Assembly: GCF_001194135.2 (NCBI RefSeq)
Contig: NC_068992.1
Span: 19,031,182 to 19,095,181 of the forward strand
Source: Octopus bimaculoides
Taxonomy: Eukaryota
Length of the DNA: 64,000 nt
Direction of reading: 5' to 3'
The notes under the pieces were generated by a model. It saw only the letters and a list, made by a program, of their open reading frames with translations, was not told the DNA's origin and searched no databases. Below, one piece after another: positions 28,119 to 61,323 of this stretch. Every line of letters starts with the position of its first letter. Position 1 is the stretch's first letter. Position numbers and translations under genes: made by a program.

Positions 28119-29221
28119 CAAGATCAAAGCTTCCCACCAGAAATTACCAAGAACATGTAAATAAAAGAAATACCACAAATAACTGCAGAAAATATCAAAA
28201 ACACGTAATGTAATGAAATACAAACCAAAAACAAGTAATAAAAAGAAATACACACCAAAAAACACGTAATGAAAAGATATGAAACACAAGACCAATGCCT
28301 CCCCACCAGAGATGACAAAAATCATATAATGAATAGAAATACAAGTAACTGCAGAATATGTAGTTATAGAGAAGGAACAATAAATCATATTGTTTCTGGC
28401 TGTCCACTCGTGACTAAGAAGGAATATATTCACACATACGACAGTGTTGGGAACTATATACACTTGAAGTTACGCAAACACTATAGAATAACAGTAGAAA
28501 GAAATGGTATACGCACACATCAGAGAAGGTCAGAGAAAATGAGAAAGCAAACATACTCTGGGATATGCCAATACACACACATGGGGAAATTAAGGCCAAT
28601 AGGCCGGATATGGTTGTCAGAGATCATCGAGTAAAAAAATGCTTTCTAATCGATGTATCAATACCAATGTTTCTCTAAAAGAAATGGAGAAACTTTGAAG
28701 ATACAAAAATCTGGAAATAAAGGTAACTCGAATGCGGAGTCTAAAAACAGAAACAATTCATATCATAGTATTGGGATATGCCAATACACACAGAGAAATT
28801 AAGGCCAATAGGCCTGATATAGCTTTCAGAGACCATGAAGAAAAAAAATGCTTTCTAATTGATGTATCAATACCAGCAGATGACAATGTTTCCGTAAAAG
28901 AAATGGAGAAACTTTCAAAATACAAAGACCTGGAAATAGAGGTAACTCGAATGTGAAATCTAAAAACAGAAACAATTCCTATCATAGTAGGTGCCTTAGG
29001 TATGATAAAAACATATTCAGACAAATACATAACAAAAACGCCAGGACTTACAAATATATATAACATACAGAAAATTGCACTATTGGGCGCTGCACACAAC
29101 CTACGCAAAACACTTTCAATACAGTAACCATAAGAGCATCACAGCAAACCACAGCACCTAACTAAGGCACACAGAGCTGCGCTCGGTAGTAAAGTGAAAG
29201 CACGCTATAAAAATAAAACTA

Positions 29222-29270: not shown

Positions 29271-30289
29271 NNNNNNNNNNNNNNNNNNNNNNNNNNNNNN
29301 NNNNNNNNNNNNNNNNNNNNNNNNNNNNNNNNNNNNNNNNNNNNNNNNNNNNNNNNNNNNNNNNNNNNNNNNNNNNNNNNNNNNNNNNNNNNNNNNNNNN
29401 NNNNNNNNNNNNNNNNNNNNNNNNNNNNNNNNNNNNNNNNNNNNNNNNNNNNNNNNNNNNNNNNNNNNNNNNNNNNNNNNNNNNNNNNNNNNNNNNNNNN
29501 NNNNNNNNNNNNNNNNNNNNNNNNNNNNNNNNNNNNNNNNNNNNNNNNNNNNNNNNNNNNNNNNNNNNNNNNNNNNNNNNNNNNNNNNNNNNNNNNNNNN
29601 NNNNNNNNNNNNNNNNNNNNNNNNNNNNNNNNNNNNNNNNNNNNNNNNNNNNNNNNNNNNNNNNNNNNNNNNNNNNNNNNNNNNNNNNNNNNNNNNNNNN
29701 NNNNNNNNNNNNNNNNNNNNNNNNNNNNNNNNNNNNNNNNNNNNNNNNNNNNNNNNNNNNNNNNNNNNNNNNNNNNNNNNNNNNNNNNNNNNNNNNNNNN
29801 NNNNNNNNNNNNNNNNNNNNNNNNNNNNNNNNNNNNNNNNNNNNNNNNNNNNNNNNNNNNNNNNNNNNNNNNNNNNNNNNNNNNNNNNNNNNNNNNNNNN
29901 NNNNNNNNNNNNNNNNNNNNNNNNNNNNNNNNNNNNNNNNNNNNNNNNNNNNNNNNNNNNNNNNNNNNNNNNNNNNNNNNNNNNNNNNNNNNNNNNNNNN
30001 NNNNNNNNNNNNNNNNNNNNNNNNNNNNNNNNNNNNNNNNNNNNNNNNNNNNNNNNNNNNNNNNNNNNNNNNNNNNNNNNNNNNNNNNNNNNNNNNNNNN
30101 NNNNNNNNNNNNNNNNNNNNNNNNNNNNNNNNNNNNNNNNNNNNNNNNNNNNNNNNNNNNNNNNNNNNNNNNNNNNNNNNNNNNNNNNNNNNNNNNNNNN
30201 NNNNNNNNNNNNNNNNNNNNNNNNNNNNNNNNNNNNNNNNNNNNNNNNNNNNNNNNNNNNNNNNNNNATATATATATACGTGTGTGCGT

Positions 30290-45265: not shown

Positions 45266-47019
45266 ATGTTACTAGAACCTCCCCACCAGGATTTTGATAA
45301 GAAGATAAATGTGAAGTCGCACAATGCCAAGAGAACTTTCGCTTTTATTGCAGATAGTGTTCTATAATTCTATATGTATATTTTCCTGTGTGTAAAATGA
45401 AAGAGATTAAATATAGCTGGCTATTCATTTATTCGTCACTTCAAGTATCCCTTGAGAAACAAGTTATAAATGTGAAAAGGTAACAGAGAATACGTGTGAT
45501 ACATCAATCTATCAGTGTGATATTAAATATTTTCGAATAGTCAGATCACTTTCAAAAATATACAACTAATGATTCACTTTCGTCACGCACTGATAACATA
45601 TATGGCGGTATATGCTAAAAGTGATTTCGCCGGTGTGCAGATCTATGATGGAAGATGTTTTGTCTCGTCTTTTTTTATATTTCGAGCTACATTTTCCAGC
45701 GTATACTTTGGTTTATATATTTCTTCTCTTACGAAGACGGTAGAATTTGATTTTTTAACAATTGGGTGTTATATCTAGCAGGTCACGAAGAATTTCTTGA
45801 ACCATACTGGAACACAGCAAGAAAGACTACGTAGTGCAGTATAGTGCATTCGAACGAACCTTTTCTCCTTTAATTTTTTAGTTCAATTTAGAGCTATATT
45901 GTCTAAACGCCATGCTGAAACAGTCTACATAATTGAATTTCTATAGCTTTTCTCTCGTACCTGTTATGTCCGGAGTTAGTGTTTATGTGAGATTTTAAGT
46001 AATATCTGTCTCAAAATTCTAACGAAGATCTCGCGATATAACAGCGTTGAATTTATACCTGAATTCCTAGAGTCTTGAATGGATGGAGTACGCAACTAGT
46101 AAGCTGAGGAGCGAAGGCTATTGTAGTAATGGTACAAGATAGATCAAGGACACAGCACATCTAAGAACTTAGGCCGCAATATGTTTGCGAATGATGTTAC
46201 CAATACGTAGGGTGGGCTTTTTTTGAACGCAGCCTAAAGAGNNNNNNNNNNNNNNNNNNNNNNNNNNNNNNNNNNNNNNNNNNNNNNNNNNNNNNNNNNN
46301 NNNNNNNNNNNNNNNNNNNNNNNNNNNNNNNNNNNNNNNNNNNNNNNNNNNNNNNNNNNNNNNNNNNNNNNNNNNNNNNNNNNNNNNNNNNNNNNNNNNN
46401 NNNNNNNNNNNNNNNNNNNNNNNNNNNNNNNNNNNNNNNNNNNNNNNNNNNNNNNNNNNNNNNNNNNNNNNNNNNNNNNNNNNNNNNNNNNNNNNNNNNN
46501 NNNNNNNNNNNNNNNNNNNNNNNNNNNNNNNNNNNNNNNNNNNNNNNNNNNNNNNNNNNNNNNNNNNNNNNNNNNNNNNNNNNNNNNNNNNNNNNNNNNN
46601 NNNNNNNNNNNNNNNNNNNNNNNNNNNNNNNNNNNNNNNNNNNNNNNNNNNNNNNNNNNNNNNNNNNNNNNNNNNNNNNNNNNNNNNNNNNNNNNNNNNN
46701 NNNNNNNNNNNNNNNNNNNNNNNNNNNNNNNNNNNNNNNNNNNNNNNNNNNNNNNNNNNNNNNNNNNNNNNNNNNNNNNNNNNNNNNNNNNNAAAAAAAA
46801 AAAAAAAAAAAAAAAAAAAAGGAAATTTTCAAATTCGCAGTCAAGAAAACACATGCTTCATACAAAAACTTTAAACAAAAAGGTAACGTGAAATACTGGT
46901 AAGTGATAAATTATATATTTCAGTATATCACATTTACTATATTTTTTATTTCGAAAGACAATCCAAATATTATATATTATCAGAAGGCTTCAGTTGTCAT
47001 ACAACTTTTTTTTCTGTTC

Positions 47020-47345
47020 CGCTAGGCATAGTTGTGTGACATTAAGCCCGTTTCTCAGCCACACGATTTCAGGTTTAATCATACTGTGTGGCACATTGGG
47101 CAAGTGTCAACTATTGCCTCTGATCGACCAACGCCTTTTGAGTGGATTTGGTAAATGGAAACTGAAAGAATCTCGTGTGTCTTAACACGGCTTTATTATC
47201 GGTATTGGTACATTTACGTCTCTGAAACTTAGCATTTCGGCAAAAGAAAACGACAGAAGTATCTGGTTTTAAAAAGTACTGGGGTCGATTCGTTCGACTG
47301 AAAAGACATGGCAGTGGTCCGACTGAAAAAAGAAATAAACACGCT
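47020..47345 (+). mobile_element. Degenerate family-A SINE
   Basis: tgtggcacattgggcaagtgtc...gagtggatttggt...ggggtcgattcgttcgact. Confidence 0.7.
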
Positions 47346-49071
47346 GTTTTCCATCGTATGGTGCATTTTATTTTCTTATCGAATGTTTTACCTTCGGATT
47401 TATGCATTTCATTTAACTTCAAGTTTATTACATAGTAAATATTTAATATCTCGAATGTAGCTGAAGAAGTATTAAAGTTTTGCGTTTAAGCTCGCATTTA
47501 TGTGCATGAATTGGCAGAATATTTAGAGCCTTACAAAAATAACTTACTGTGTCCTAATTTCGCCTACAACAGACGTGATATACAGTCCAACCTTCATCAG
47601 GCGTCTTGGGGAAATTTCGAAACTGTTTTTTCATCTAAACGTGACTGGTTTCGCATCAGCCTCTGTGTCACAAATACCACCTTTCAATAAACGAAGTAAA
47701 GACGGTTTTTGATGGACTAGAGTAGTGAGAAATGCTAAATAAATGTGTGCAGTTTTTCAACAACATTCAGATCTCAAAATATTTTTATTAATGGGTTATT
47801 TGTTTTGACATCCTTGTCAATCTAGACAGGGATATATCAGAGTATTCTCAGTTAAACATAAAGAGCCTATTGCATTACTACATCATTTACATAGATGCGT
47901 GGAACAACTGCTTAAATGTATTTGTTGTTGACTGCCTTTATATAGTTCGGTTGTGTATGTCTGGAAGCGGTGAAATAAGTAATAGTTAAATACTAAAGAC
48001 AACCAAAATTAGTGTTACTGTACAGATGTTGAAAATTATTTTTAGCGGGTGTCACATTAACAATATTAATGTTACGCCCGTAGTATATAGAGCAGTTGTA
48101 AGTTAACCTAAATGATAGAGCTCCCCCAAGAGACATTCTGAAAACATAAAAAAAAATGCTAATATGAAGATACATAAACATTTCAAATGGATGGGTATAT
48201 TAAATATGTAACGGCCAGTAAAATATAAAACAAAAAAACAAATGAAATAAGTGTTGTATTTTGCTTTTACACACACAAAAGAAAAAAAAAGAAGGCTCAC
48301 TTCCCAAATATGCCACTCTGCTGCTAAATAATAAAGACATCTGAAATGTAAGTAACGGCCATTTGGGGAACTGGGGACCTATTAAGCTCTTCTCAATATA
48401 TTTTTAGTGTTTGTTGCTGCTTTGTTTTGTTTCAACTTTTTCGATACAGTGTTCACAAGTGAAAAAACGAAGACAGAGGAGATGAGGAAAGTGAAAAAGA
48501 GAAGGATAATGTATGTGAGAATGAAGGAGTGAGGTGGTATAATTCGCTATCTTTTGGTTTAAATCTAACATTTATTTCGTCTGTGACAGTATGGGAAGTC
48601 AGCTCTATGACTTAATGTATTAGTGGTGCAAACGAAATAAAAGTCTGGAAAGTGAATTGAAATGTGATGCGTAATCGGCTAAAATCACAACTTGTACGCA
48701 AATAAAATTAGTTTGAAGCAACCTGGAAGCAAATTGGAAAAAGTACAGCATCTTAGCCACTAATTCATTTGTACTTATTTCTAATAGCTTCAATTGAATA
48801 TGAAAGGAAATTGACGCCTAGACGTTGTTTCAAAAAAAAAAAAAAAAAACGTTAAAAGCAGCGGAGTATCTTCAATTTGTGCAGAGTGTATTCTATTTTG
48901 ACGAATAGTACAAGTGAAAATTGACTAATTTAATAAAAAATATAAATCTAAAATATGGAATGTCACATTTATGAAGAAGTGGGGTTGGATGTGAGTTTCA
49001 ATTTTACGACTATAGAACAAGGGAAGAACACGCAGTTTTTGTTAACGAACTTAACCCACGTTACTCTATAT

Positions 49072-49290
49072 CAGCGGTTCTCGACAGGGGTTCATATCCG
49101 ATTTTTCGTTAAAATTTATGTGCAATAAATTGGATATAATTCTACAATATACAAAATATTTGAGCAATTTTAATTCCTAATATAAAAGAAACAAAAAAAA
49201 ATTTTTAAACATCGCATGACAACAGGGTTCCCCCGAGTAAAATAGCAACCAAAAATGTCTATGGGCACAAAGGGGTAACTTAAGTATCTT
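49072..49290. mobile_element. hAT-like MITE fragment (inverted relative to 5178-5533)
   Basis: cagcggttctcgacagggg terminus; gagtaaaatagcaacc. Confidence 0.5.
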
Positions 49291-50219
49291 GCTCTCTATT
49301 AAAGCCTAATAAGCAGAAATCAGAGTTTCAACTTCAAGATATTTGCTTAACTTACAATGCTGGATATATTTTGCACAAAAAATTTCAAGGAAAATAAAAT
49401 TAGTACAAAAAAGAAATTCAATGTATTAATTATATGTATATACAGGATACATTGTCTACTTCAGAGGAATTGATAGAGTTGATGCCATATGGATTTAAAT
49501 GCAGAATCCTAAGAAATATCTTAACAGATTAAGACATTAATACAGATCTCAGAGTATTCTCCAAGCTTTAGTAGGTCACACATTTTAGAAAACCTTAATG
49601 TAAATCAAGCATTTGACTGGTATTCTTTTTTTTTCATTCAATATCGTTCTGAGTTGAAAGTTATTCCGCCCTCACATCTCCAAAGTGACAACATCTCCAT
49701 ACCAACAACCAGGACCTTTAAAAAAAATTTATTGGGGTGTTTGTAAATTGCAGGCTGTTCGTGCATTATTGCAGGATAGTGATTAGCTGGTTCTAGCATA
49801 AATTCTAGTTTTGCCGATTTTATAGGACAATTTTCTTTTTCCTGTGGTAAAATTTGGGGAATTTATAATCTGAATCATTCAAACTTTTATTCGCGCCTGT
49901 CATTTTTCCCGCCAGAGTACATGTATGATGTAATTTGAAAGCAAATCTTTGGTCTGGGTCTTATCCGCCTCCCCCTTTGGTTTAAGTACAATCGGAATTC
50001 CAAAACCTACATTTTTGTGAGTGCAAAAGGGAAGCATTTCATTCAGCGGAATGTTGTGTGATTTTTTCTCGAGACTCCATGATTAGTCATATCGAACAAT
50101 TGCATTTTGTCTAACAAAATGTAGTTCACGTTTATGCTGAGATCACACCTGGCAGTCGAATATCTAAATAATCCACTGATACTGTTTCTTTTCTTTTTGT
50201 GCCTACTGTTCCATTGTAC

Positions 50220-50570
50220 TTGGCGCAACTACTGCAGAGTTCATTTACAATCGAATCGTTTATTAGAATAACGATTCCGTTGGTAATTTCTTGCTCCAGA
50301 CATGCAACTTAAAGTACCTTCAATTTCAAGCAAATTAAATTCCTTCACATTTTATGTTAGAAATCAACTCAGGTTTTTCTTGTTTTTTTTACTGGATTTC
50401 AAATAAAATGGCAGCTGAGAATCTACATGACTTTTCTCATATGAATGTTTCCTATCAACCCAAAGTCCGCCAATTTTTAGAAAGACTATAGTCGAAGTTC
50501 GTGTTATTGGGACTTTTTTGATTGACCATGGGATGGCAATATCGAAATTGGTTGTAGTTCGACCGCAATT
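50220..50570 (-). pseudogene. Possible heavily decayed insulin-like paralog
   Basis: Collinear weak motifs CGRTTTNF ... SKKNKK ... NGIV ... NELCSSC, in the same order and strand as the intact gene. Most cysteines are missing and frames are broken. Confidence 0.2.
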
Positions 50571-51036
50571 CATTAAGTAACTATTTGCAGGCATTGGTAT
50601 TCGCTCTTAATTTTGTCATACCAAAATACAATAAGAACAATCTTTAGTAAAATCATTTTTTCAAGAACAAGCATGAAGAAATTATTTTTGTGGATATATT
50701 TACTAATACTTCAGAAAATTTTATAGCCTTTTGGTGATACGTGAGTATCAAAAAAAATGGAGTAAAATATATCAAGAAAGAAATTAAAAGCATTTAACAG
50801 AAGTCTAAAATGTGGTTGAACATTAAAAGTGATGAATTGAAAAAATATAATCTCAGACTGAAGAAAATATGCTAATAAGCAATATTGATAGGATTATAAA
50901 AAATTTAAAATTCAATATTAAGTCTTTGATTAAACAAGAAAGTGGTTGTAAAAAAAAGAAAAGAAAAAAAAAAAAAGACATACAGGTCGTTCAGTCAGGC
51001 AGCTGTAAATGACCTAGATAATCCTTTGGGATTTGC

Positions 51037-51426
51037 TCAGCAGTATGCTAAGAGTTCATCTAAGCTACAAGTATGATGACAGCATTCACACACAATTCCA
51101 CACCAAAAGTTGCTTTTTCTTGTTAAGTGCGACTTTGCTTTCTTTTTACTGATAACAACTCCATTGAGTTTGCTGCGTTTAGGTTTCGGACAACGAGTTG
51201 TGTAAAATAAAATTTCGTCCATTTTACCATATTCTTCCCGGTTGCAGACAAGTCGCAAGAAGTTGGGCATTTTAGCGGCGCAGTAGCTACTTGACACAGA
51301 AGTTCTACTGATAGTTTCATCGTTACACCGATGTTCCAAACCCGCCTTCACCGTATAGCGACTAAGTGTGGTAACGAAAAGCAAGAAAACAATATTCCAT
51401 GTAAACATTTTGATAATCTTTTCCAT
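51037..51426 (-). CDS. Molluscan insulin-related peptide (insulin-like peptide) precursor, 129 aa, single coding exon
   Basis: Hydrophobic signal peptide (aa 1-28, predicted cleavage VKA|GL). B-chain C34-x14-C49-x11-C61. Basic C-peptide with KR, KKK and RK sites. A-chain GIVCECCHHTCSLDELLAYC matching C-x-CC-x3-C-x8-C, the pattern of molluscan insulins. Confidence 0.95.
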   Translation of the reverse strand: MEKIIKMFTWNIVFLLFVTTLSRYTVKAGLEHRCNDETISRTSVSSSYCAAKMPNFLRLVCNREEYGKMDEILFYTTRCPKPKRSKLNGVVISKKKAKSHLTRKSNFWCGIVCECCHHTCSLDELLAYC

Positions 51427-51464
51427 TTTTTTATGTTTTCACGAGTCTGAAGCCTCTTGGGTGT

Positions 51465-51490
51465 GTACTGCTTGACAGGAAGGTTAGAAT
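51465..51490 (-). promoter_or_regulatory. Candidate 3' splice site of a 5'-UTR intron of the insulin-like gene
   Basis: Minus strand reads ttCTAACcttcctgtcAAG/CAG, i.e. a branch-like CTAAC, a short pyrimidine tract and AG, 41-44 nt upstream of the ATG. Insulin-family genes commonly have a 5'-UTR intron. Confidence 0.4.
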
Positions 51491-51984
51491 TGATTTTAAA
51501 ACCAGCGTGTCAAAGAATATATTTAATTAACCACCCACGTAAAAGTTTCGCTCTTCCTTTCGCTGCTGCTGCTGCTGCTGTTTGAAATATATTTGTCGGG
51601 ACAAATATCGTAGCTTCTAATTCTGCTGAGAAAACCGGATGTTGTTATAGAATCACCTGGGTTGCCCATACAGAAGTTATCTTAATATTAGTAGCTTTTC
51701 CAACCGTGACTAAAAGAAAGAAGAAAAAAAACAACTTTTTTCGACTACATTCAATGTTTAGTATATCTGTTTATTTTGGCCCTTCGTTGGCCAGCGGGGT
51801 TCCTTGGGACACCATCAAATTTTAAAAGTAAGGCAACTTGTATATTTTTTAAAAATTTAAATCATTTTATATCTCATGACTTTTATTGTCAATAGTTTAT
51901 GTATGTACACAGACATTTTGAGTTAGGATTTTCCAGTCATATGGATGTTATAGCATATAATATAGTAATTGAGGTCCAACTGGA

Positions 51985-53160
51985 CGCCCATTAGCATTTT
52001 GTGAAACTACTTAGCAGCATTTCGCCTGTATTTACTTTCAGAGTTCAAATTCCACCGAGGACGATCTTATTTTTCACCGTTTCGGGGACCATAAAATAAG
52101 TACTAGTTGAGCGCTGGAGTCGATATAATCGACTTGTCTCCCACTACTGAAATTGCTGGCCTTGTGACACAATTTGAGTGCAATGATTCCGAAAGATGAC
52201 ATTGAATTTGCATTCTTAGCACTTTCTGGCAGATTCGAACGTGAATATGTAAATCGCTGTTGAAATTCTTCAGTGGAGAACAACTTGCAGGCGAATGCGT
52301 GATTAATAACACTGTGCGAGATACAATAGGGTAAAGAAGATTTCGGAAAACCGTTGTTTCGACATTTTGCACATGACTTACCACTGTACACATTCTTTCA
52401 TTCGTTTCAGCTATGCGGTTGTGGTCATACTCGAGCACCATATGATGATTTTTAGTTCCAATTTAGGATCTATGCTAGGTCTTTTGAGAGGAGCAGACCT
52501 CCCAAAAGAAAGCCGATTTAATCAATTATAATACATGAATGGTCTTCTGTTTTATGGGACCTGAAAGGTGAAGGTGACTTTCGTCACCTTTGCCTTTCAT
52601 CCCGGGATCTGATTTGAACTCAGAGACTAAAGAGCTATAACTAAATGCCGCAACGCATTTTGTTCAACGCTCTAGCGGCGCCGCTGTAAAATCAACACTC
52701 TACTGCTCTTTAAATGATATTGGGTCGAGTTATTTCGGGGTTGTTTGTTAGTCTATAGCATCAGACCAAGCACATCACTCGTATTTTATTCATCGACTCT
52801 GGAATTCTGAAGTACAATGATCACTTCGGTGTGATTAGAAATTGAATTAAAGCGTCGGATTAAATACAATGAATCGTCTTTGCAAACTCCCTAAGAAATC
52901 TGCCTGCCTGCCTGCCGGCTTTGTCCTTTCCATAGCAAAATTTCCTAATCTCAGCACAAGGCCTTCAGTATTTGAGGGGAGGTATTAGTATTATTCGGGA
53001 TAATTTATCTCAAAACATGGCAAGTATTATATTGTATCAGTCCTGAAGTCCTGAAGTAATGGAACGGCGTGAATTGAACTCAGAATGTAAAGATCCGTAA
53101 CAAATACAGCAAACTATTTTTCCCCGACGCCATCATGATCCCGCCAGCTCGCCGTCAATC
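51985..53160. mobile_element. Cluster of family-B SINEs (+ 51985-52180; - 52490-52690; - 52930-53160)
   Basis: agagttcaaattccaccgagg; gaactcagag; gaactcagaatgtaaag...cgccagctcgccg. Confidence 0.7.
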
Positions 53161-53247: not shown

Positions 53248-54047
53248 CTGTGAAGTTATTGTGTGAGTCTATGGTGAACTGTTTATTGAATTGTTGCCGT
53301 TGTTGATTGAATTGTTGTTTGAATTGTTGCCGTTGTTGATGCGTTAATTGTTGTTTTGTTTCCCATTGTGGGGAAAATGGAGAAGGAGCCGGAGGCAGGC
53401 CAACGTTATGCGGCCGCAACGGGCAAAGGAGTAGACACGCGAGAGTTGGAGGTCCGCGAGATAGAAGTGGAGCCTAGAATGACGAAGGAGAGTGAGAAAT
53501 TAATCACAAAGGAAGGAAACACTTTGAAGCTAACGCCCCTGAAGGCCAACGTGGCAAAAAGAACGGTTATATTTAGAACCAAGAAGGCAGCCACGAGAAA
53601 GATAGACATAGCACCATTAGAGGTCATATAAGAACAACAAACCTTACGAGAGGGAGAAGATACGCCACTGAGGAGGTGCGCTTCACAACGGAAGAGGAAG
53701 CAATGAAGCAATAAAGGAATCAATAAAGCACTCCGCAGAGGCAATAAGGACAGAGGAATGGGTGCTCTTGCCTTCGTACTGCGGCAAACGTGTGGCCAAG
53801 GTGTAGTGACGTTAATCAGAAAGGATCCAGACAAGGGGGTCGTTTTAGATTGGGGTAGTGAGGTCGGAGCGTGGCCTGATCATCGCTACATTTGTGTTGT
53901 CTCTGTATTATTAATTTAATTCGATTTTGAAAATATCTTATATAATTTTTATATTCATATTTTATGTAAAACTATAACGTATTACTGATCCCAGTCCGTT
54001 GTTTTGTCCATTTCTGTGTTTGGCCCCCTGTGGGCAATAAAGAAATT
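53248..54047 (+). mobile_element. ORF1-only LINE derivative (HAL1-like) inserted into a family-B SINE
   Basis: Decayed ORF1 (KEGNTLKLTPL...EVRF...RTEEWVLLPSYCGKRVAKV), then 3' end tgtgtttggccc..ggcAATAAAg. The host SINE is split (53205-53247 and 54048-54215) with a degenerate TSD gtatcccgtct/ggatttcgtct. Confidence 0.7.
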
Positions 54048-54394
54048 GGATTTCGTCTGTTTTTATGTTCTGAGTTCAAATTCCGCCGAGGTCGACTTTG
54101 ACTTTCATCCTTTTGGGGTCCTTTAATTATATAGAAGCTGCGTACTGGGGTCGATCTTATCGACTGGCACCCTCCTCCAAAATTTCGAGCCTTGTGCCTA
54201 GAGTAGAAATGAATATATTTTAAAGAGAAAAATTAAAAGGTTAAGCGTGCGTGTGTACGTTTTGTAGGTTAGACTAGAATATATNNNNNNNNNNNNNNNN
54301 NNNNNNNNNNNNNNNNNNCAGAAAAAAAGAGCTGGTTTAGGTTTGCTTTGAACTTATGATAATCCGATTACGATTTACTTGGTGTAAAGTACAC

Positions 54395-55720
54395 TTCTTT
54401 AAATGTAATTTTATTGCCAGCCACAAGGGCCAAACACAGAGTGGACAACTCAAGACATGTAGGGACATGTAACAATTAAAATAAAATTATGAAACTATGA
54501 ATGATAAATGATAATGATTTATGAAGTATGTGCCACTTACCTAACCTCAGCAGCAACATTAACGTCCTTTCATATCCAATTAAAGTTAATATCGTATTGA
54601 CCCACTAATTTATCATATTCTATTACGCCCGGAACTTCCTTATTGTCGCATATCATTTCTCTGTATTCCGCGCTTCTTTACAGTCTCTTATTATCCTCTG
54701 GCACCAATGCGCCTAAAGTCATTTTTTTTCTTTTTTCCTTCCCTTCATGTCTATCACTTTTACATCTCTCCATTCCACTAACTTATCCACCACTTCCATT
54801 TTTACACCTTTCAATAAAGAGCACACAAGACAAATGGGAGGGGCGCTTTGCGTTTTTTTTTTTTTGTATAACTGCTGTCCTTTATTTAAACTTTTTTGTG
54901 TTGGTGGGGAATGGGTGAGTTTGGTGTCCGCAGGGGAGGGCGGGGTTGAGAAGGTATGAGTGGGGTGGGGTGGGTACGTGCTGGGGTTCACTTAAGCTAT
55001 CCTTTTCCCCTCTTCCTCTGTTTTCTTCCCGTAGCTTGCCATCCACCTTCCTCATTTCTTTCTTCCATCCTTTCCAGTTTCTTCTCTGCTCTCCCCTGGT
55101 TTGGATTAATTTTCAGAGGGCAATCCGCTCTAATGTGGCCCTTTTGGCCACATTTATAGCAACGAGAGATTCTGCCATCTACCCATACTTTCATTATTGT
55201 TTCTCCTACTGTCACTGTTTCCGCAAGCATCTCTAAGTTTTCCACCTTACTTTGTATTATTAATTCCAAGATTTTACCGTGCCAATTAGTGCCTTCCGTT
55301 TCTGTGGCTTGGAGTATGGCGACCTCTTTCTCGCCTCCTAGAAGCGCAGCCGCCGCCACCCAAGCCAAGTATATTTCAGGGGGGATTCCCTCCACCCTGA
55401 CCTTGGAAGTTCTTCTTCCAGGATATGTGGGTAGAAGGATTACCCTTTCCGTTTTCATCGATTTTACAGAGCTCTCCTTCGCTTTTTATCTGTTCTTAAA
55501 ATATACCTCAACAGTGCCATATTGGTTTCCTCTTGCCAGATTGGGCTCAACGCCTTTTCAATTTCGTCTGTCGGTTCATTTTATAATCTTTTTTTTTTCT
55601 CGATAGAACAGACTTTATACACAATTTTCCTTTCTTCCATTTCCTTTAGCATTTCTTGTGGCAGTGACAATTTTACGTCACCACCTTCCTTTTTTAACAC
55701 TTCTTTAAACATGTTTAATT
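54395..55720 (-). mobile_element. ORF1-only LINE derivative with gag-type zinc knuckle (related family)
   Basis: ORF 54997-55458 contains CYKCGQKGHIRADC; upstream broken frames give KEGGDVKLSLP and RGNQYGTVEVYF. No endonuclease or RT follows. It has the same 3' end tgtgtttggccc..ggcAATAAA at about 54400-54440. Confidence 0.75.
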
Positions 55721-57221: not shown

Positions 57222-57379
57222 GGTGCAGGCGTGGCTCTGTGGTAAGAAGGTTGGTTCCCAACCACATAGTTCCAGGTTCAGTCCCACTGCGTGGCACCTT
57301 AGGCCAGTTACTTCTACTATAGCCTCGGACCACCAAAACCTTGTGAATGGATTTGGTAGACGAAAACTGAAAGACCGTC

Positions 57380-57423
<44 letters not shown>

Positions 57424-57730
57424 AATATGAGTATATGCATATATATGTACATGTATGTATATACGTTCATCTACATGTACATATAGATACATAACTGGGT
57501 ACATGACGTGGCAAAAGAACAAGGACAAAATGGTAAACAAGGTGCAACAAACAAGCAAGCCACATAGAAACATCCCCTTCATCAGCTGTCACCATTAAAA
57601 CTCCGGCGTTTCGAAGAATTAAGGCAGTACGCATCGTTAAAATGGTTCTTCCCACGAACACAAATTAAATTGTTTTCATGGAGGGTAGTGGCGGACGGAA
57701 AACAAGACAGGAAAACGAAACGGTGAAATA

Positions 57731-57770
<40 letters not shown>

Positions 57771-57950
57771 ACTATCGCTTGACAACCGATGTTGGTGTGT
57801 TCACGTCCTCGAAACTTAGCGGTTTTGCAAAAGAACAGATAGAATAAGTACTAGGCTTATACCATCTAGTACTAGTCTTGGCGTCGATTTCTTCGACTAC
57901 GGGCGGTGCTCCAGCATGAGCACAGTCAAATGACTGAAACAAGTAAAATA
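57222..57950 (+). mobile_element. Family-A SINE: head 57222-57382 and body 57765-57950, separated by microsatellites and another insertion
   Basis: ggcgtggctctgtggtaagaag...ggttcagtcccactgcgtggcacc; cgcttgacaaccgatgttggtgtg...ggcggtgctccagcatg. Confidence 0.8.
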
Positions 57951-58039
57951 ATCAGACAATAAAGTAACCCCAACTCTCTAAAATTACTGGCCTTGTGCAA
58001 CATTTGAAACTGTTATTATACTATTATCTTAATAATAAT

Positions 58040-58710
58040 CTTAAGGCTGTGAGCTGGTAGAATCATTAGCACGCCGGGTGAAATGATTAACGGTATCCCG
58101 TCTGCCGCTACGTTCTGTGTTCATTTTGAAAAATGCTAAACCGTTGCGCTAGACTTTGACAAATTTTATATCTTGGCATCTTAGCAACATCCTTATTATA
58201 AATATCCTGTTCTTATATCAGTTTCTCACAATAAAACTAAATCAGGTCAATTGCATAGATACTTTTAGTGTTTATTCTTTTCTACACTAGGCACAAAACC
58301 TTAAATTTTTGGAGAGTAGGCCAGTCGATTAGATCGACGCCAGTACGTAATTGGTACTTAATTCATCGACCGCGAAAGGTTGAAAGGTAAAGTCGATCTC
58401 AGCGGAATTTGAACTCAGAATGTAACGGCAGACGAAATACTGCTAAGCATTTCGCCCAGCGTGCTAACGTTCTGCCAGCTCGCCGACTCAATTCTTTTTT
58501 TACTCTAGGCACAAAGCTCGAAATTTGGGGGGAGAGGGACCAGTCAATTAAATCGACCCAAGTACACAACTGGTACTTAATTTATCGACCCCGAAAAGAT
58601 GAAAGGTAAAGTCGACCTCGGCGGAATTTGAACTCACAACATAAAGACAGACGAAACACCGCTAAGCATTTCGGCCGGCCTGCTAACGTTTCTACAAGCT
58701 CGCCGCTCAT
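58040..58710. mobile_element. Family-B SINE cluster (+ head 58040-58120; two tandem minus copies 58285-58490 and 58500-58710)
   Basis: Duplicated aaaggtaaagtcga..ggaatttgaactca..ctaagcattt..ctaacgtt. Confidence 0.85.
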
Positions 58711-59105: not shown

Positions 59106-60095
59106 CAATGCGCTTTGGTGTTGCCAGACATGTAAATTAAGTGTTTTGATTATCATTCCTTACGTACATTATAATATTCCGATGTATTCTAAAAAGAAAC
59201 ATGCATTGAAAACATTGTTTATACCTAAAATGGTTAAATATAGAAATGTGAAAGTCGTAAATGCTAGATGTAAAAAGAGACCCCCTTGTCTTTGTTTACG
59301 TCTATTGACCTAAATCGTAGTGGGCACATCAACCTGATTACTGAACGACCACATGTCAAAGAGGATAGCATCCAATTCATGACAAGGTCACCCGCCACAC
59401 TAAATAAATAAATAAATAAATATATATATATATATATATATATAAAAATTAGCAGGAAATGCTGACATCGTAAATTAAAGTCTATTAACTGTCAACAGCT
59501 GCCGCACACGTCCAAGATTATAGGGAAGCAGTTTAGTCTTCTTAGAGGACAATCAGTCACTCGTCACATACCGTGAGAAACACGCCGAAAATACTTTTTT
59601 AAAATGTTGTGAATAAGATGGTAAGGGGAAAATAAAGAAAACGAAAAAGTATAGAAGGAAGGAAATATGAAAAGGAAGGCGAAAATAACCTGGAGATATA
59701 TTTTTATTGGAAAATGTAGAAAAAGCTTAGACGTTTGAGAGACTGTGTGAAGATGTAACAAACATCATCATGTCTTTGAGCAGCAGCAATATTCAGAAAG
59801 TTAAAAAAAGAAAAAGAAACAAAGCTACAAACTCTATGTCTCTAACACACAGTGGGAAGACAAAGTTTTCATTCTTACAAAATGAATATATCCATAATTC
59901 ATATTTCATATACCTACCTACCTACTTACCTATCTATCTATCAACCTCCGTCTCTCTATCACTATATGAGAGTGTATGTGTGTGTATGTGGATGTATGTG
60001 CGGATATATGTATATATATACCTATACTCTTTTACTTATTTCATCGGTCTCTTTTGCGGAACCACTAAGGGGTTGTCAAGTGATGTTGGACACAG

Positions 60096-60136
<41 letters not shown>

Positions 60137-60674
60137 CNNNNNNNNNNNNNNNNNNNNNNNNNNNNNNNNNNNNNNNNNNNNNNNNNNNNNNNNNNNNNNN
60201 NNNNNNNNNNNNNNNNNNNNNNNNNNNNNNNNNNNNNNNNNNNNNNNNNNNNNNNNNNNNNNNNNNNNNNNNNNNNNNNNNNNNNNNNNNNNNNNNNNNN
60301 NNNNNNNNNNNNNNNNNNNNNNNNNNNNNNNNNNNNNNNNNNNNNNNNNNNNNNNNNNNNNNNNNNNNNNNNNNNNNNNNNNNNNNNNNNNNNNNNNNNN
60401 NNNNNNNNNNNNNNNNNNNNNNNNNNNNNNNNNNNNNNNNNNNNNNNNNNNTATATATAATTATATATATGAATATAACATGTATATGTGTGTATGTGTG
60501 TAAGAATACGAGATGATAGAAGAATAAACGCTGATCTTCTGAGCTGAATTAGCTAGCATACAACTGTTTCTGTTATAAGATGCGACTTCGCAGTGGACTC
60601 GTAGGTGAGTGCTTGAGTAAGACCTTGTAGATTTATCGGTGGCCTGAATTTAGAAGTAGTCTCTCTATGTATTC

Positions 60675-60880
60675 TTTTGCTTGTTTCAATCATTAGGCTG
60701 AAACATGCAGGAGCACTGCATTAAAGGGTCTTTTTCGAAGAAATTAACCTGAGCACTTATTCTTTGTAAGCCGGTACTTACTCTATCGTTCCATTTTCCC
60801 GAACCACTAAGTTACGGGCTTATAGATACATCAGCTTCGGTTAAGTGATGGGAGGGGAACAAACATAGACACACACAGAC
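60675..60880 (-). mobile_element. Family-A SINE tail
   Basis: cttattctttgtaagccggtacttactctatcg...cgaaccactaagttacggg. Confidence 0.7.
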
Positions 60881-61323
60881 GCATGAATAAATAAATAAAT
60901 ATATGTATATATATATATATATATATNNNNNNNNNNNNNNNNNNNNNNNNNNNNNNNNNNNNNNNNNNNNNNNNNNNNNNNNNNNNNNNNNNNNNNNNNN
61001 NNNNNNNNNNNNNNNNNNNNNNNNNNNNNNNNNNNNNNNNNNNNNNNNNNNNNNNNNNNNNNNNNNNNNNNNNNNNNNNNNNNNNNNNNNNNNNNNNNNN
61101 NNNNNNNNNNNNNNNNNNNNNNNNNNNNNNNNNNNNNNNNNNNNNNNNNNNNNNNNNNNNNNNNNNNNNNNNNNNNNNNNNNNNNNNNNNNNNNNNNNNN
61201 NNNNNNNNNNNNNNNNNNNNNNNNNNNNNNNNNNNNNNNNNNNNNNNNNNNNNNNNNNNNNNNNNNNNNNNNNNNNNNNNNNNNNNNNNNNNNNNNNNNN
61301 NNNNNNNNNNNNNNNNNNNNNNN

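Follow-up and report, generated by a model that had tools for sequence, protein, structure and literature searches.

An intronless octopod gene for a ten-cysteine insulin-like peptide that probably contains a fifth disulfide bridge

Why should an insulin-like peptide (ILP), built in other molluscs on eight cysteines, carry ten of them, and does the surplus pair belong to a working peptide or to a gene in decay? This question is raised by an open reading frame (ORF) found in a stretch of 64,000 nucleotides of Octopus bimaculoides DNA, which was analysed at its full length and is hereinafter called the window (assembly GCF_001194135.2, contig NC_068992.1, positions 19,031,182–19,095,181). The ORF lies on the minus strand, which the preliminary description of the locus did not specify, and runs from window position 51426 (ATG at 51426–51424) to 51037 (stop codon at 51039–51037), comprising 129 codons and the stop. 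Based on the data presented below, we consider it rather likely that this is a functional, tissue-restricted, single-exon gene, coding for a secreted peptide of the insulin superfamily (of the molluscan insulin-related peptide, or MIP, type) with an acquired fifth cystine. The ten-cysteine peptide probably contains a fifth disulfide bridge unseen in other molluscan insulins.

Translation places cysteines at residues 34, 49, 61, 79, 109, 113, 115, 116, 120 and 129, and assigns codons CGT and TGT to R78 and C79, AAA and CGC to K83 and R84, AGA and AAA to R103 and K104, and GCC to A50, exactly as had been described. The Pfam family Insulin (PF00049) matches residues 47–129 with E=2.1e-6 and 29 bits, the curated cut-off being 23 bits. 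Core spacing typical of the family is present both in the B chain (C-x11-C, C49 and C61) and in the A chain (CC-x3-C-x8-C, formed by C115, C116, C120 and C129). The protein also has the A-chain signature of MIPs, C-x-CC-x3-C-x8-C, which begins as C113-E-C115-C116 and proceeds to C120 and C129, while the additional cysteine of the B-chain extension is C34. The disulfide scheme of the cuttlefish ILP and the molluscan A-chain signature have been published (PMC9221753), and by homology with this scheme three canonical bonds (C49–C116, C61–C129 and C115–C120) and the fourth, MIP-type bond (C34–C113) map to the same residues as in the preliminary description, leaving C79 and C109 as extra ones. DNA contigs of five independent same-species runs (X1, X2, X3, X4 and X12, dated 2015–2025) are identical over the whole ORF, so that sequencing error is excluded. 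The frame is intact in Argonauta, the probability for a random 124-codon frame with 33% GC to stay open is ~7e-5, and the ORF is more than a product of chance. A tblastn search revealed no paralog of this gene within the 64-kb window. The sole variant among the DNA contigs is a TA indel polymorphism after position 51431, in the 5′-untranslated region (5′UTR), 5 nt before the ATG. The allele with the insertion was registered in X2, X3, X4, X12, X14, X15 and organism C (a related Octopus species), while the window has the shorter allele.

How unusual the two extra cysteines are was estimated in a set of 68 retrieved MIP-type proteins, composed of the window protein, the protein P0003 of Argonauta hians and 66 others. 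Neither C79 nor C109 has a counterpart in any of these 66, and a cysteine directly before residue A1 occurs in 2 of the 68 proteins, namely in the window protein and in P0003. The glycine at position B8, preserved in 57 of 59 scorable proteins, is replaced by Ala in the ten-cysteine protein of Octopus and by Thr in P0003; the loss noticed earlier in the motif CAAKM is, therefore, real and common to both genera. The dibasic pair KR or RR precedes the A chain in 61/68 proteins but in neither of the ten-cysteine ones, which have RK103-104 (Octopus) or TSNN (Argonauta) instead. Altogether the ten-cysteine protein departs from the MIP hallmarks in the number of cysteines (exactly eight), B8 Gly, pre-A KR/RR and the C-peptide intron.

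P0003 is a hypothetical protein of 123 aa. An exhaustive search among representatives gave 47 matches, the best two of which, P0003 and P0002 (150 aa, labelled “con-Ins Im1-like”), both belong to Argonauta hians. The word-index homolog search with the protein alone returned only the query itself, the alignment used as a query added only P0003, and the broad search with a MIP profile added no more ten-cysteine members. In the mature region P0003 is 46% identical to the Octopus protein (45/98), and all ten cysteines are kept. The first extra cysteine is embedded in Y-D-T-V-C-P-E-P (Y-T-T-R-C-P-K-P in Octopus) and the second one in Y-W-C-G-I-V-C-E-C-C (F-W-C-G-I-V-C-E-C-C in Octopus). The Thr substituting for B8 Gly is found in the context C-T-Q, the protein terminates at its last cysteine, and the coding sequence (CDS) is a single exon at L001:10001-10372. 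Organism C and Argonauta, the latter supplying the single distant ortholog at hand, thus both show the co-occurrence of C79 and C109 that had been suggested earlier as a test; this outcome favours a fifth bond. Besides the gene itself, the two loci share a conserved non-coding element of ~230 bp (59355–59581, minus strand; blastn identity 78–84%, E=5e-24) located ~8 kb upstream of the Octopus gene, with a 190-bp counterpart at L001 6134–6329, 3.7 kb upstream of the P0003 gene. Since the flanking blocks are collinear, the window gene and the P0003 gene are positional orthologs. Judging from its position, the element may be an enhancer of the ten-cysteine gene or of its neighbour. Among its motifs are TAAT-type ones, TGACAG and TGACCTTG; the Octopus copy is interrupted by a TA/TTTA microsatellite. 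One more block, 38 bp long, lies inside the long 3′-untranslated region (3′UTR) at 48034–48071, corresponds with 84% identity to L001 11413–11450 (~1 kb downstream of P0003) and is collinear with the gene; its E-value is weak (1.7e-4), and it may be a conserved 3′UTR element.

The precursor encoded on the minus strand follows the usual order of domains. The putative signal peptide occupies residues 1–28 (51343–51426); cleavage between VKA and GLEH is predicted from the alignment with leaders of other cephalopod ILPs, which end in AGLEHTC, and its hydrophobic part spans residues 7–21, with a helix at 2–23 in the AlphaFold2 (AF2) model. The B domain with its extensions (residues 29–82, 51181–51342), delimited by alignments, includes C34, C49 (B7), A50 (B8), C61 (B19) and C79. 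The latter belongs to a conserved T-x-C-P-x-P motif, and its codon TGT (51190–51192) is kept in organisms C and D and in Argonauta. The C domain (residues 83–104, 51115–51180) contains KR83-84, the conserved I-x-KKKAKS-x-L with KKK94-96, and RK103-104. The A domain (residues 105–129, 51040–51114), SNFW-C-GIV-C-E-CC-HHT-C-SLDELLAY-C, harbours C109 (codon TGT at 51100–51102, kept in organism C and Argonauta), and the protein ends at its last cysteine. Two AF2 runs gave a mean pLDDT (predicted local distance difference test) of 64.7 for the full-length protein and 62.0 for the mature one, with helices at the B and A positions and in the conserved C-domain motif. Foldseek found no match in the PDB for either of these low-confidence models, and sequence search in the PDB gave weak matches confined to the A domain (E of at least 0.015), including 8pi6, 5wbt and 1bqt. 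The segment of the C-peptide (I/L)-x-x-K-x-x-A-x-S-Y-L-x-KR (51139–51165, residues 88–96) is conserved in ILPs of bivalves, gastropods, cephalopods and annelids; it is predicted to be helical, and A97 is invariant across molluscan ILPs, which is strikingly strong conservation for a “spacer” peptide. The basic cluster KKKAK of Octopus and Argonauta is part of K-x-x-A-x-S-x-L, a motif common to all molluscan ILPs.

What can the two additional cysteines do? C79 is located at approximately B37, seven residues beyond the B30-equivalent, while C109 directly precedes A1 Gly. Unpaired cysteines are rarely kept in secreted proteins. In the insulin fold B30 and A1 are neighbours, and short linkers between them therefore yield folded single-chain insulins. 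Because of this adjacency a seven-residue tail can reach C109, so that the pairing of C79 with C109, although not proven, seems to be the best reading of the extra cysteines. In this case, after removal of the signal peptide between A28 and G29, the insulin core would fold with C49–C116, C61–C129 and C115–C120 supplemented by the MIP bond C34–C113, and pairing of C79 and C109 would staple the B-domain tail to the beginning of the A domain and thereby close a C-domain loop of 29 residues. With such a staple, the connection of B to A would no longer depend on the position at which the loop is cut, or on any cut. As the staple would hold the link between B and A, it would explain the drift of dibasic sites (from KR to RK in Octopus and to complete loss in Argonauta), and it would likewise account for the loss of the folding-critical B8 Gly. 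The mature form would either remain a single chain or be cut inside the loop, where no candidate site other than KKK94-96 is conserved, and either form would have an IGF-like closed topology. An insulin-like receptor or insulin-binding proteins would be its likeliest targets.

Processing into two chains at KR83-84 and RK103-104, as drawn in the preliminary description, finds only partial correspondence in the data. Both sites are present in both Octopus species, but in P0003 their places are taken by E-I-K-D and T-S-N-N, and the only basic site common to the two proteins is KKK94-96. Since the two sites are lacking in Argonauta, the drawn two-chain product is not a conserved feature. Less probable than the stapled peptide described above is a product that is never cut into two chains, i.e. 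a single-chain IGF-like growth factor, in which the C domain forms a disulfide-closed loop. It agrees with the replacement of the prevailing pre-A KR/RR by RK in Octopus and with its absence, along with the absence of the post-B KR, in Argonauta, as well as with conservation of the predicted helical motif I-x-KKKAKS-x-L, and ten-cysteine IGF-type peptides have a precedent in locust aIGFs (PMC8220825). However, KR83-84 and RK103-104 are both kept in Octopus and organism C, KKK94-96, which both genera preserve, may act as a convertase site, and the protein stops at its last cysteine having no C-terminal extension of D/E type. As for the adjacent codons CGT and TGT of R78 and C79, it is arithmetically true that one CpG transition separates them from an RR site, but this carries no evidence. 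Their descent from a former RR site was rejected: Argonauta has GTA-TGT (Val-Cys) there, and RR of the canonical paralog aligns three residues upstream of R78-C79.

Is the gene maintained by selection? In organism C its full ortholog was found on a DNA contig (X20), differing from the window ORF in 16/390 nt, which gives 10 nonsynonymous and 4 synonymous codons with exclusively conservative amino-acid changes. All ten cysteines, A50-A51, R78-C79, KR83-84 and RK103-104 remained unchanged. A partial contig of organism D covers residues 9–80 and has the same C79, and a 2.8-kb contig of organism B carries the same flank substitutions as organism C; further species were not found in the indexed runs searched with the most conserved 99 nt. 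A stronger test than dN/dS is provided by the flanking sequence. Divergence of organism C in the flanks reaches 8.2% (242/2968 sites) compared to 4.1% in the ORF (p=0.001). At nonsynonymous sites it is 3.9%, i.e. half of the flank rate (p=0.002), while the value for synonymous sites (5.3%) is compatible with neutrality.

Transcription of the gene was evident from RNA-derived contigs. In X13, X14 and X15 the contigs break off precisely at position 51491 and continue with non-genomic CCCCGTACTCTGCGTTGATACCAC, which is the reverse complement of GTGGTATCAACGCAGAGTAC followed by GGGG. We take the latter to be the template-switch oligonucleotide, a marker of capped 5′-ends, and on this understanding 51491 is the cap site, i.e. 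the transcription start site, of the ten-cysteine gene. A TATA-like box TAAATATAT (sense orientation), putatively functional, is situated 34 nt upstream of it (51517–51525, minus strand), and its Argonauta counterpart ATATATATAA stands at a comparable distance from the corresponding ATG. The 5′UTR is, hence, 65 nt long (51427–51491); the CDS for the prepro-insulin-like peptide (51037–51426) is documented by the ORF, the Pfam match, five DNA runs and RNA contigs of X17 and X13–X16; and the 3′UTR, continuous with the CDS, extends over at least ~4.1 kb (46895–51036) with contigs of X13–X16 and X17 forming depth steps 120 > 29 > 17. All three lie on the minus strand. The length of the 3′UTR is a lower bound, set by the gap of N at 46242–46792. 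A single 2.7-kb contig of X15 spans the region between 51491 and 48832, which has, therefore, no intron.

The RNA run X17 (2015) contributed an exact 503-nt contig (50933–51434) and lower-depth contigs down to 47273. No RNA over the ORF was detected in its sister runs X21 and X22 or in X27–X29 (deep RNA of 2026, ~6% sampled). X13–X16 are four runs from one sample set of 2021, labelled “DNA?”, each with 21–24 Mb of contigs. Along 46895–51491 they behave as cDNA, since their coverage is limited to the transcript and the template-switch-oligo sequence is found at its 5′-end. They differ from each other in single-nucleotide polymorphisms and in the TA indel and therefore probably represent several individuals. 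Their depth is 103–121 (X13, X14) or 47–65 (X15, X16) in the ORF, 29–47 over 48853–50757, 15–18 over 47175–48833 and ~0–5 upstream of 51491. Just upstream of the ILP promoter, at 52100–53116, X13–X16 have contigs of ~5 depth, which may reflect a divergent or upstream transcript or background. Among all indexed public runs the ORF occurs in only five RNA-type data sets of the species (X13–X16 and X17), and expression is consequently strongly restricted. The orthologous transcript of organism C was registered as a partial RNA contig in X25.

The preliminary description overlooked that the gene is intronless, while a huge intron divides its eight-cysteine parent. The canonical eight-cysteine group of cephalopods includes P0002 of Argonauta, P0004 of Octopus bimaculoides (partial) and P0064 of Sepia, and is characterised by B8 Gly, KR before N-W-[S/T]-G-I-V-C-E-C-C and a C-terminal tail. 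P0004 (UniRef A0A0L8GK08) is truncated, having an unrelated 20-residue start and no B domain; presumably its missing B-domain exon lies beyond a very large intron. In the neighbour-joining tree the ten-cysteine clade (99% bootstrap) adjoins the cephalopod eight-cysteine clade (99%), with 68% for their joint node, and Trp two residues before A1 is common to both groups. In Argonauta a 92.5-kb intron interrupts the eight-cysteine CDS at G87, which aligns with C79, and the two genes reside on separate scaffolds (BAAFZT010000048 and BAAFZT010000015), so that an intronless copy of an intron-bearing parent occupies an unlinked site. Probably, the ten-cysteine gene arose by duplication of the cephalopod eight-cysteine ILP gene via processed mRNA before the Octopus–Argonauta split, and it is possibly a retrogene. 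An older duplication, preceding the radiation of coleoids, would also fit the tree topology. The protein libraries yielded no decapodiform ten-cysteine member, an absence that says little, since such small genes often escape annotation. After the duplication the copy would have evolved several times faster than its parent: in the region equivalent to exon 3, identity between Octopus and Argonauta is 54% for the ten-cysteine paralog and 92% for the canonical ILP, which corresponds to a ~six-fold difference in protein divergence between the same two genera and bears out the earlier notion of a fast-diverging paralog.

The same features may raise the suspicion of a decaying retrocopy or pseudogene transcribed incidentally, because the gene is intronless, its protein diverges fast, the hallmark B8 Gly and pre-A KR are gone, and the pairwise ratio of nonsynonymous to synonymous substitution rates (dN/dS), 0.55, is not significantly below 1. 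Nevertheless, an intact ORF is found in Argonauta and in three Octopus species (A, C and, as far as its partial sequence goes, D), in spite of the low probability of an open frame by chance given above; the ten cysteines and the core of the A domain are retained, nonsynonymous divergence is reduced by half relative to the flanks, and the gene has its own TATA-like box, a defined cap site and contig depth up to ~120. Pseudogenization is thus hardly credible, and decay, admitted as an option in the preliminary description, has to be abandoned: the gene is a fast-evolving yet constrained paralog, not a decaying copy.

Several observations nonetheless weigh against a functional peptide with a C79–C109 bridge that originated by retroposition. 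The co-occurrence of two extra cysteines has a single evolutionary origin, and their presence in two lineages is retention rather than covariation; with 46% of residues identical, two given positions would both be retained by chance with a probability of ~0.2. AF2 confidence around C79 is low (pLDDT ~50 in both models), so that the models speak neither for nor against the bond. In organism C dN/dS is ~0.53–0.61, a shortfall from 1 that lacks significance (Fisher p=0.53). Neither a poly-A remnant nor target-site duplications were found downstream of the stop codon or along the beginning of the 3′UTR, and since marks of retroposition are expected to be erased at such an age, intron loss remains an alternative origin. 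Finally, a single helical turn separates C109 from C113, which makes swapped pairing possible. In this variant the gene is functional, but its extra cysteines are wired otherwise, either as C34–C109 with C79–C113 or intermolecularly, in a covalent dimer or in a link with a carrier protein. In the predicted N-terminal helix of the A domain C109 and C113 would occupy positions i and i+4 on the same face. At the same time C34–C113 is the conserved MIP pair of all eight-cysteine relatives (PMC9221753), adding a new pair is simpler than rewiring the old one, and the gain of an even number of cysteines together favours an intramolecular pair. Alternative wiring looks, therefore, unlikely, and the C79–C109 bridge is retained as the preferred interpretation.

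If the bridge is real, one may ask what it serves for. In the most far-reaching version octopods would possess a new structural class of insulins derived from a retrocopy, “disulfide-stapled”, freed from the constraints imposed by B8 Gly and dibasic sites and co-opted for a specialised role in one strongly expressing tissue type. The cystine would then stand in for the peptide linkage that joins the C domain to the A chain and lock the tail of the B chain over A1. As such a role one can imagine a signal in reproduction or from the optic gland, antagonism at a receptor, or an insulin that is secreted or used as a weapon, though we find this whole scenario, examples included, decidedly improbable at present. 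Even more doubtful is an exocrine or weaponised peptide, i.e. a component of salivary-gland secretion or venom similar to that of Conus, instead of an endogenous hormone. Circumstantially it is suggested by the rapid evolution of the sequence, by RNA present in few data sets (X17, X13–X16) and missing from X21, X22 and X27–X29, and by the extra disulfides that secreted toxins typically carry. However, the cephalopod venom literature searched names no insulin, and the “con-Ins” names among the matches are automatic labels on ordinary MIP-type hormones.

In the rest of the window the environment of the gene is poor in coding sequences, the ILP gene being the only non-repeat coding gene seen in 64 kb. 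Highly repeated short elements at 52020–52220, 53960–54470, 57270–58210 and 60076–61000 look like short interspersed elements (SINE-type) or simple repeats; in three species, DNA and RNA runs alike cover them at depths from the thousands up to tens of thousands, with many chimeric joints. Remnants of retroelements were found at 54997–55458 (minus strand) and 28269–28634 (plus strand), one retroelement ORF having a CCHC zinc knuckle (Pfam zf-CCHC, E=2.7e-7) while another matches zf-RVT weakly, short of the cut-off. The assembly of the window is interrupted by 13 runs of N, 3720 N in total (e.g. 29271–30267 and 46242–46792).

The insulin family, a standard case for studying how a small disulfide-locked fold tolerates change, counts B8 Gly and the dibasic sites on either side of the C-peptide among its most invariant features. 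In vertebrates, engagement of the receptor depends centrally on the freedom of the C-terminus of the B chain with respect to A1. A natural insulin, conserved in Octopus and Argonauta, that lacks B8 Gly and has an altered or lost pre-A site and an apparent tether of the B tail offers a ready-made test of these rules and a possible template for the design of stabilised single-chain-like insulins. Cephalopod endocrinology gains a second insulin ligand, one that is lineage-specific and sharply restricted in expression, and molecular evolution a clean example of an intronless duplicate that gains a new structure instead of decaying. Two ILPs of O. bimaculoides are annotated in RefSeq, their function being unknown (PMC9221753), and the ten-cysteine gene may be one of them. 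The literature searched contains no mention of a ten-cysteine cephalopod ILP and no discussion of the window gene. Extra bridges are not a new idea as such, because ten-cysteine members of the insulin family are known elsewhere: locust aIGF has ten cysteines with five predicted disulfides, four of the cysteines being additional to the canonical six (PMC8220825). What appears to be new is the cysteine pair itself, its position at the junction of the B tail and A0, and its association with an intronless paralog of the octopod lineage.

Compared with known systems, the octopod protein is closest to MIP-type ILPs, i.e. the Sepiella/Sepia ILP (PMC9221753), Argonauta P0002 and Lymnaea MIP3. It resembles them in the order of signal peptide, B, C and A domains, in the A-chain signature C-x-CC-x3-C-x8-C, in the cysteine of the N-terminal B extension and in K-x-x-A-x-S-x-L of the C domain, with 39–44% identity, and shares with cephalopod ILPs the Trp two residues before A1 Gly. 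It differs from them in having ten cysteines rather than eight, in the replaced B8 Gly, in the replaced or lost pre-A KR, in the absence of a tail after the last cysteine and in its intronless CDS, which in the Argonauta eight-cysteine gene is divided by the C-peptide intron of 92.5 kb. Locust aIGF has the same total of cysteines, but it arose independently in arthropods, and its IGF-type precursor is long and has a C-terminal domain that is conserved. With insulins of Conus the octopod peptide has in common the fast evolution of molluscan insulin-family members, and MIP-like eight-cysteine con-Ins are the source of the automatic names mentioned above, yet no retrieved con-Ins carries a pair of the C79/C109 type. 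From the genetic point of view the nearest analogue is rodent Ins1, a functional retroposed copy of Ins2 without the C-peptide intron. Both are expressed duplicates that lack the intron of the family, while the parent keeps it; however, Ins1 is near-identical to its parent and has the same disulfides, whereas the octopod copy, whose retroposition is presumed from gene structure, diverged strongly and gained a cysteine pair. In topology the C79–C109 staple would bring the octopod peptide to the closed B–A arrangement of IGF-1/2 and single-chain insulins (8pi6, 5wbt, 1bqt). Their link is a peptide bond, while that of the octopod peptide would be a disulfide able to survive excision of the loop.

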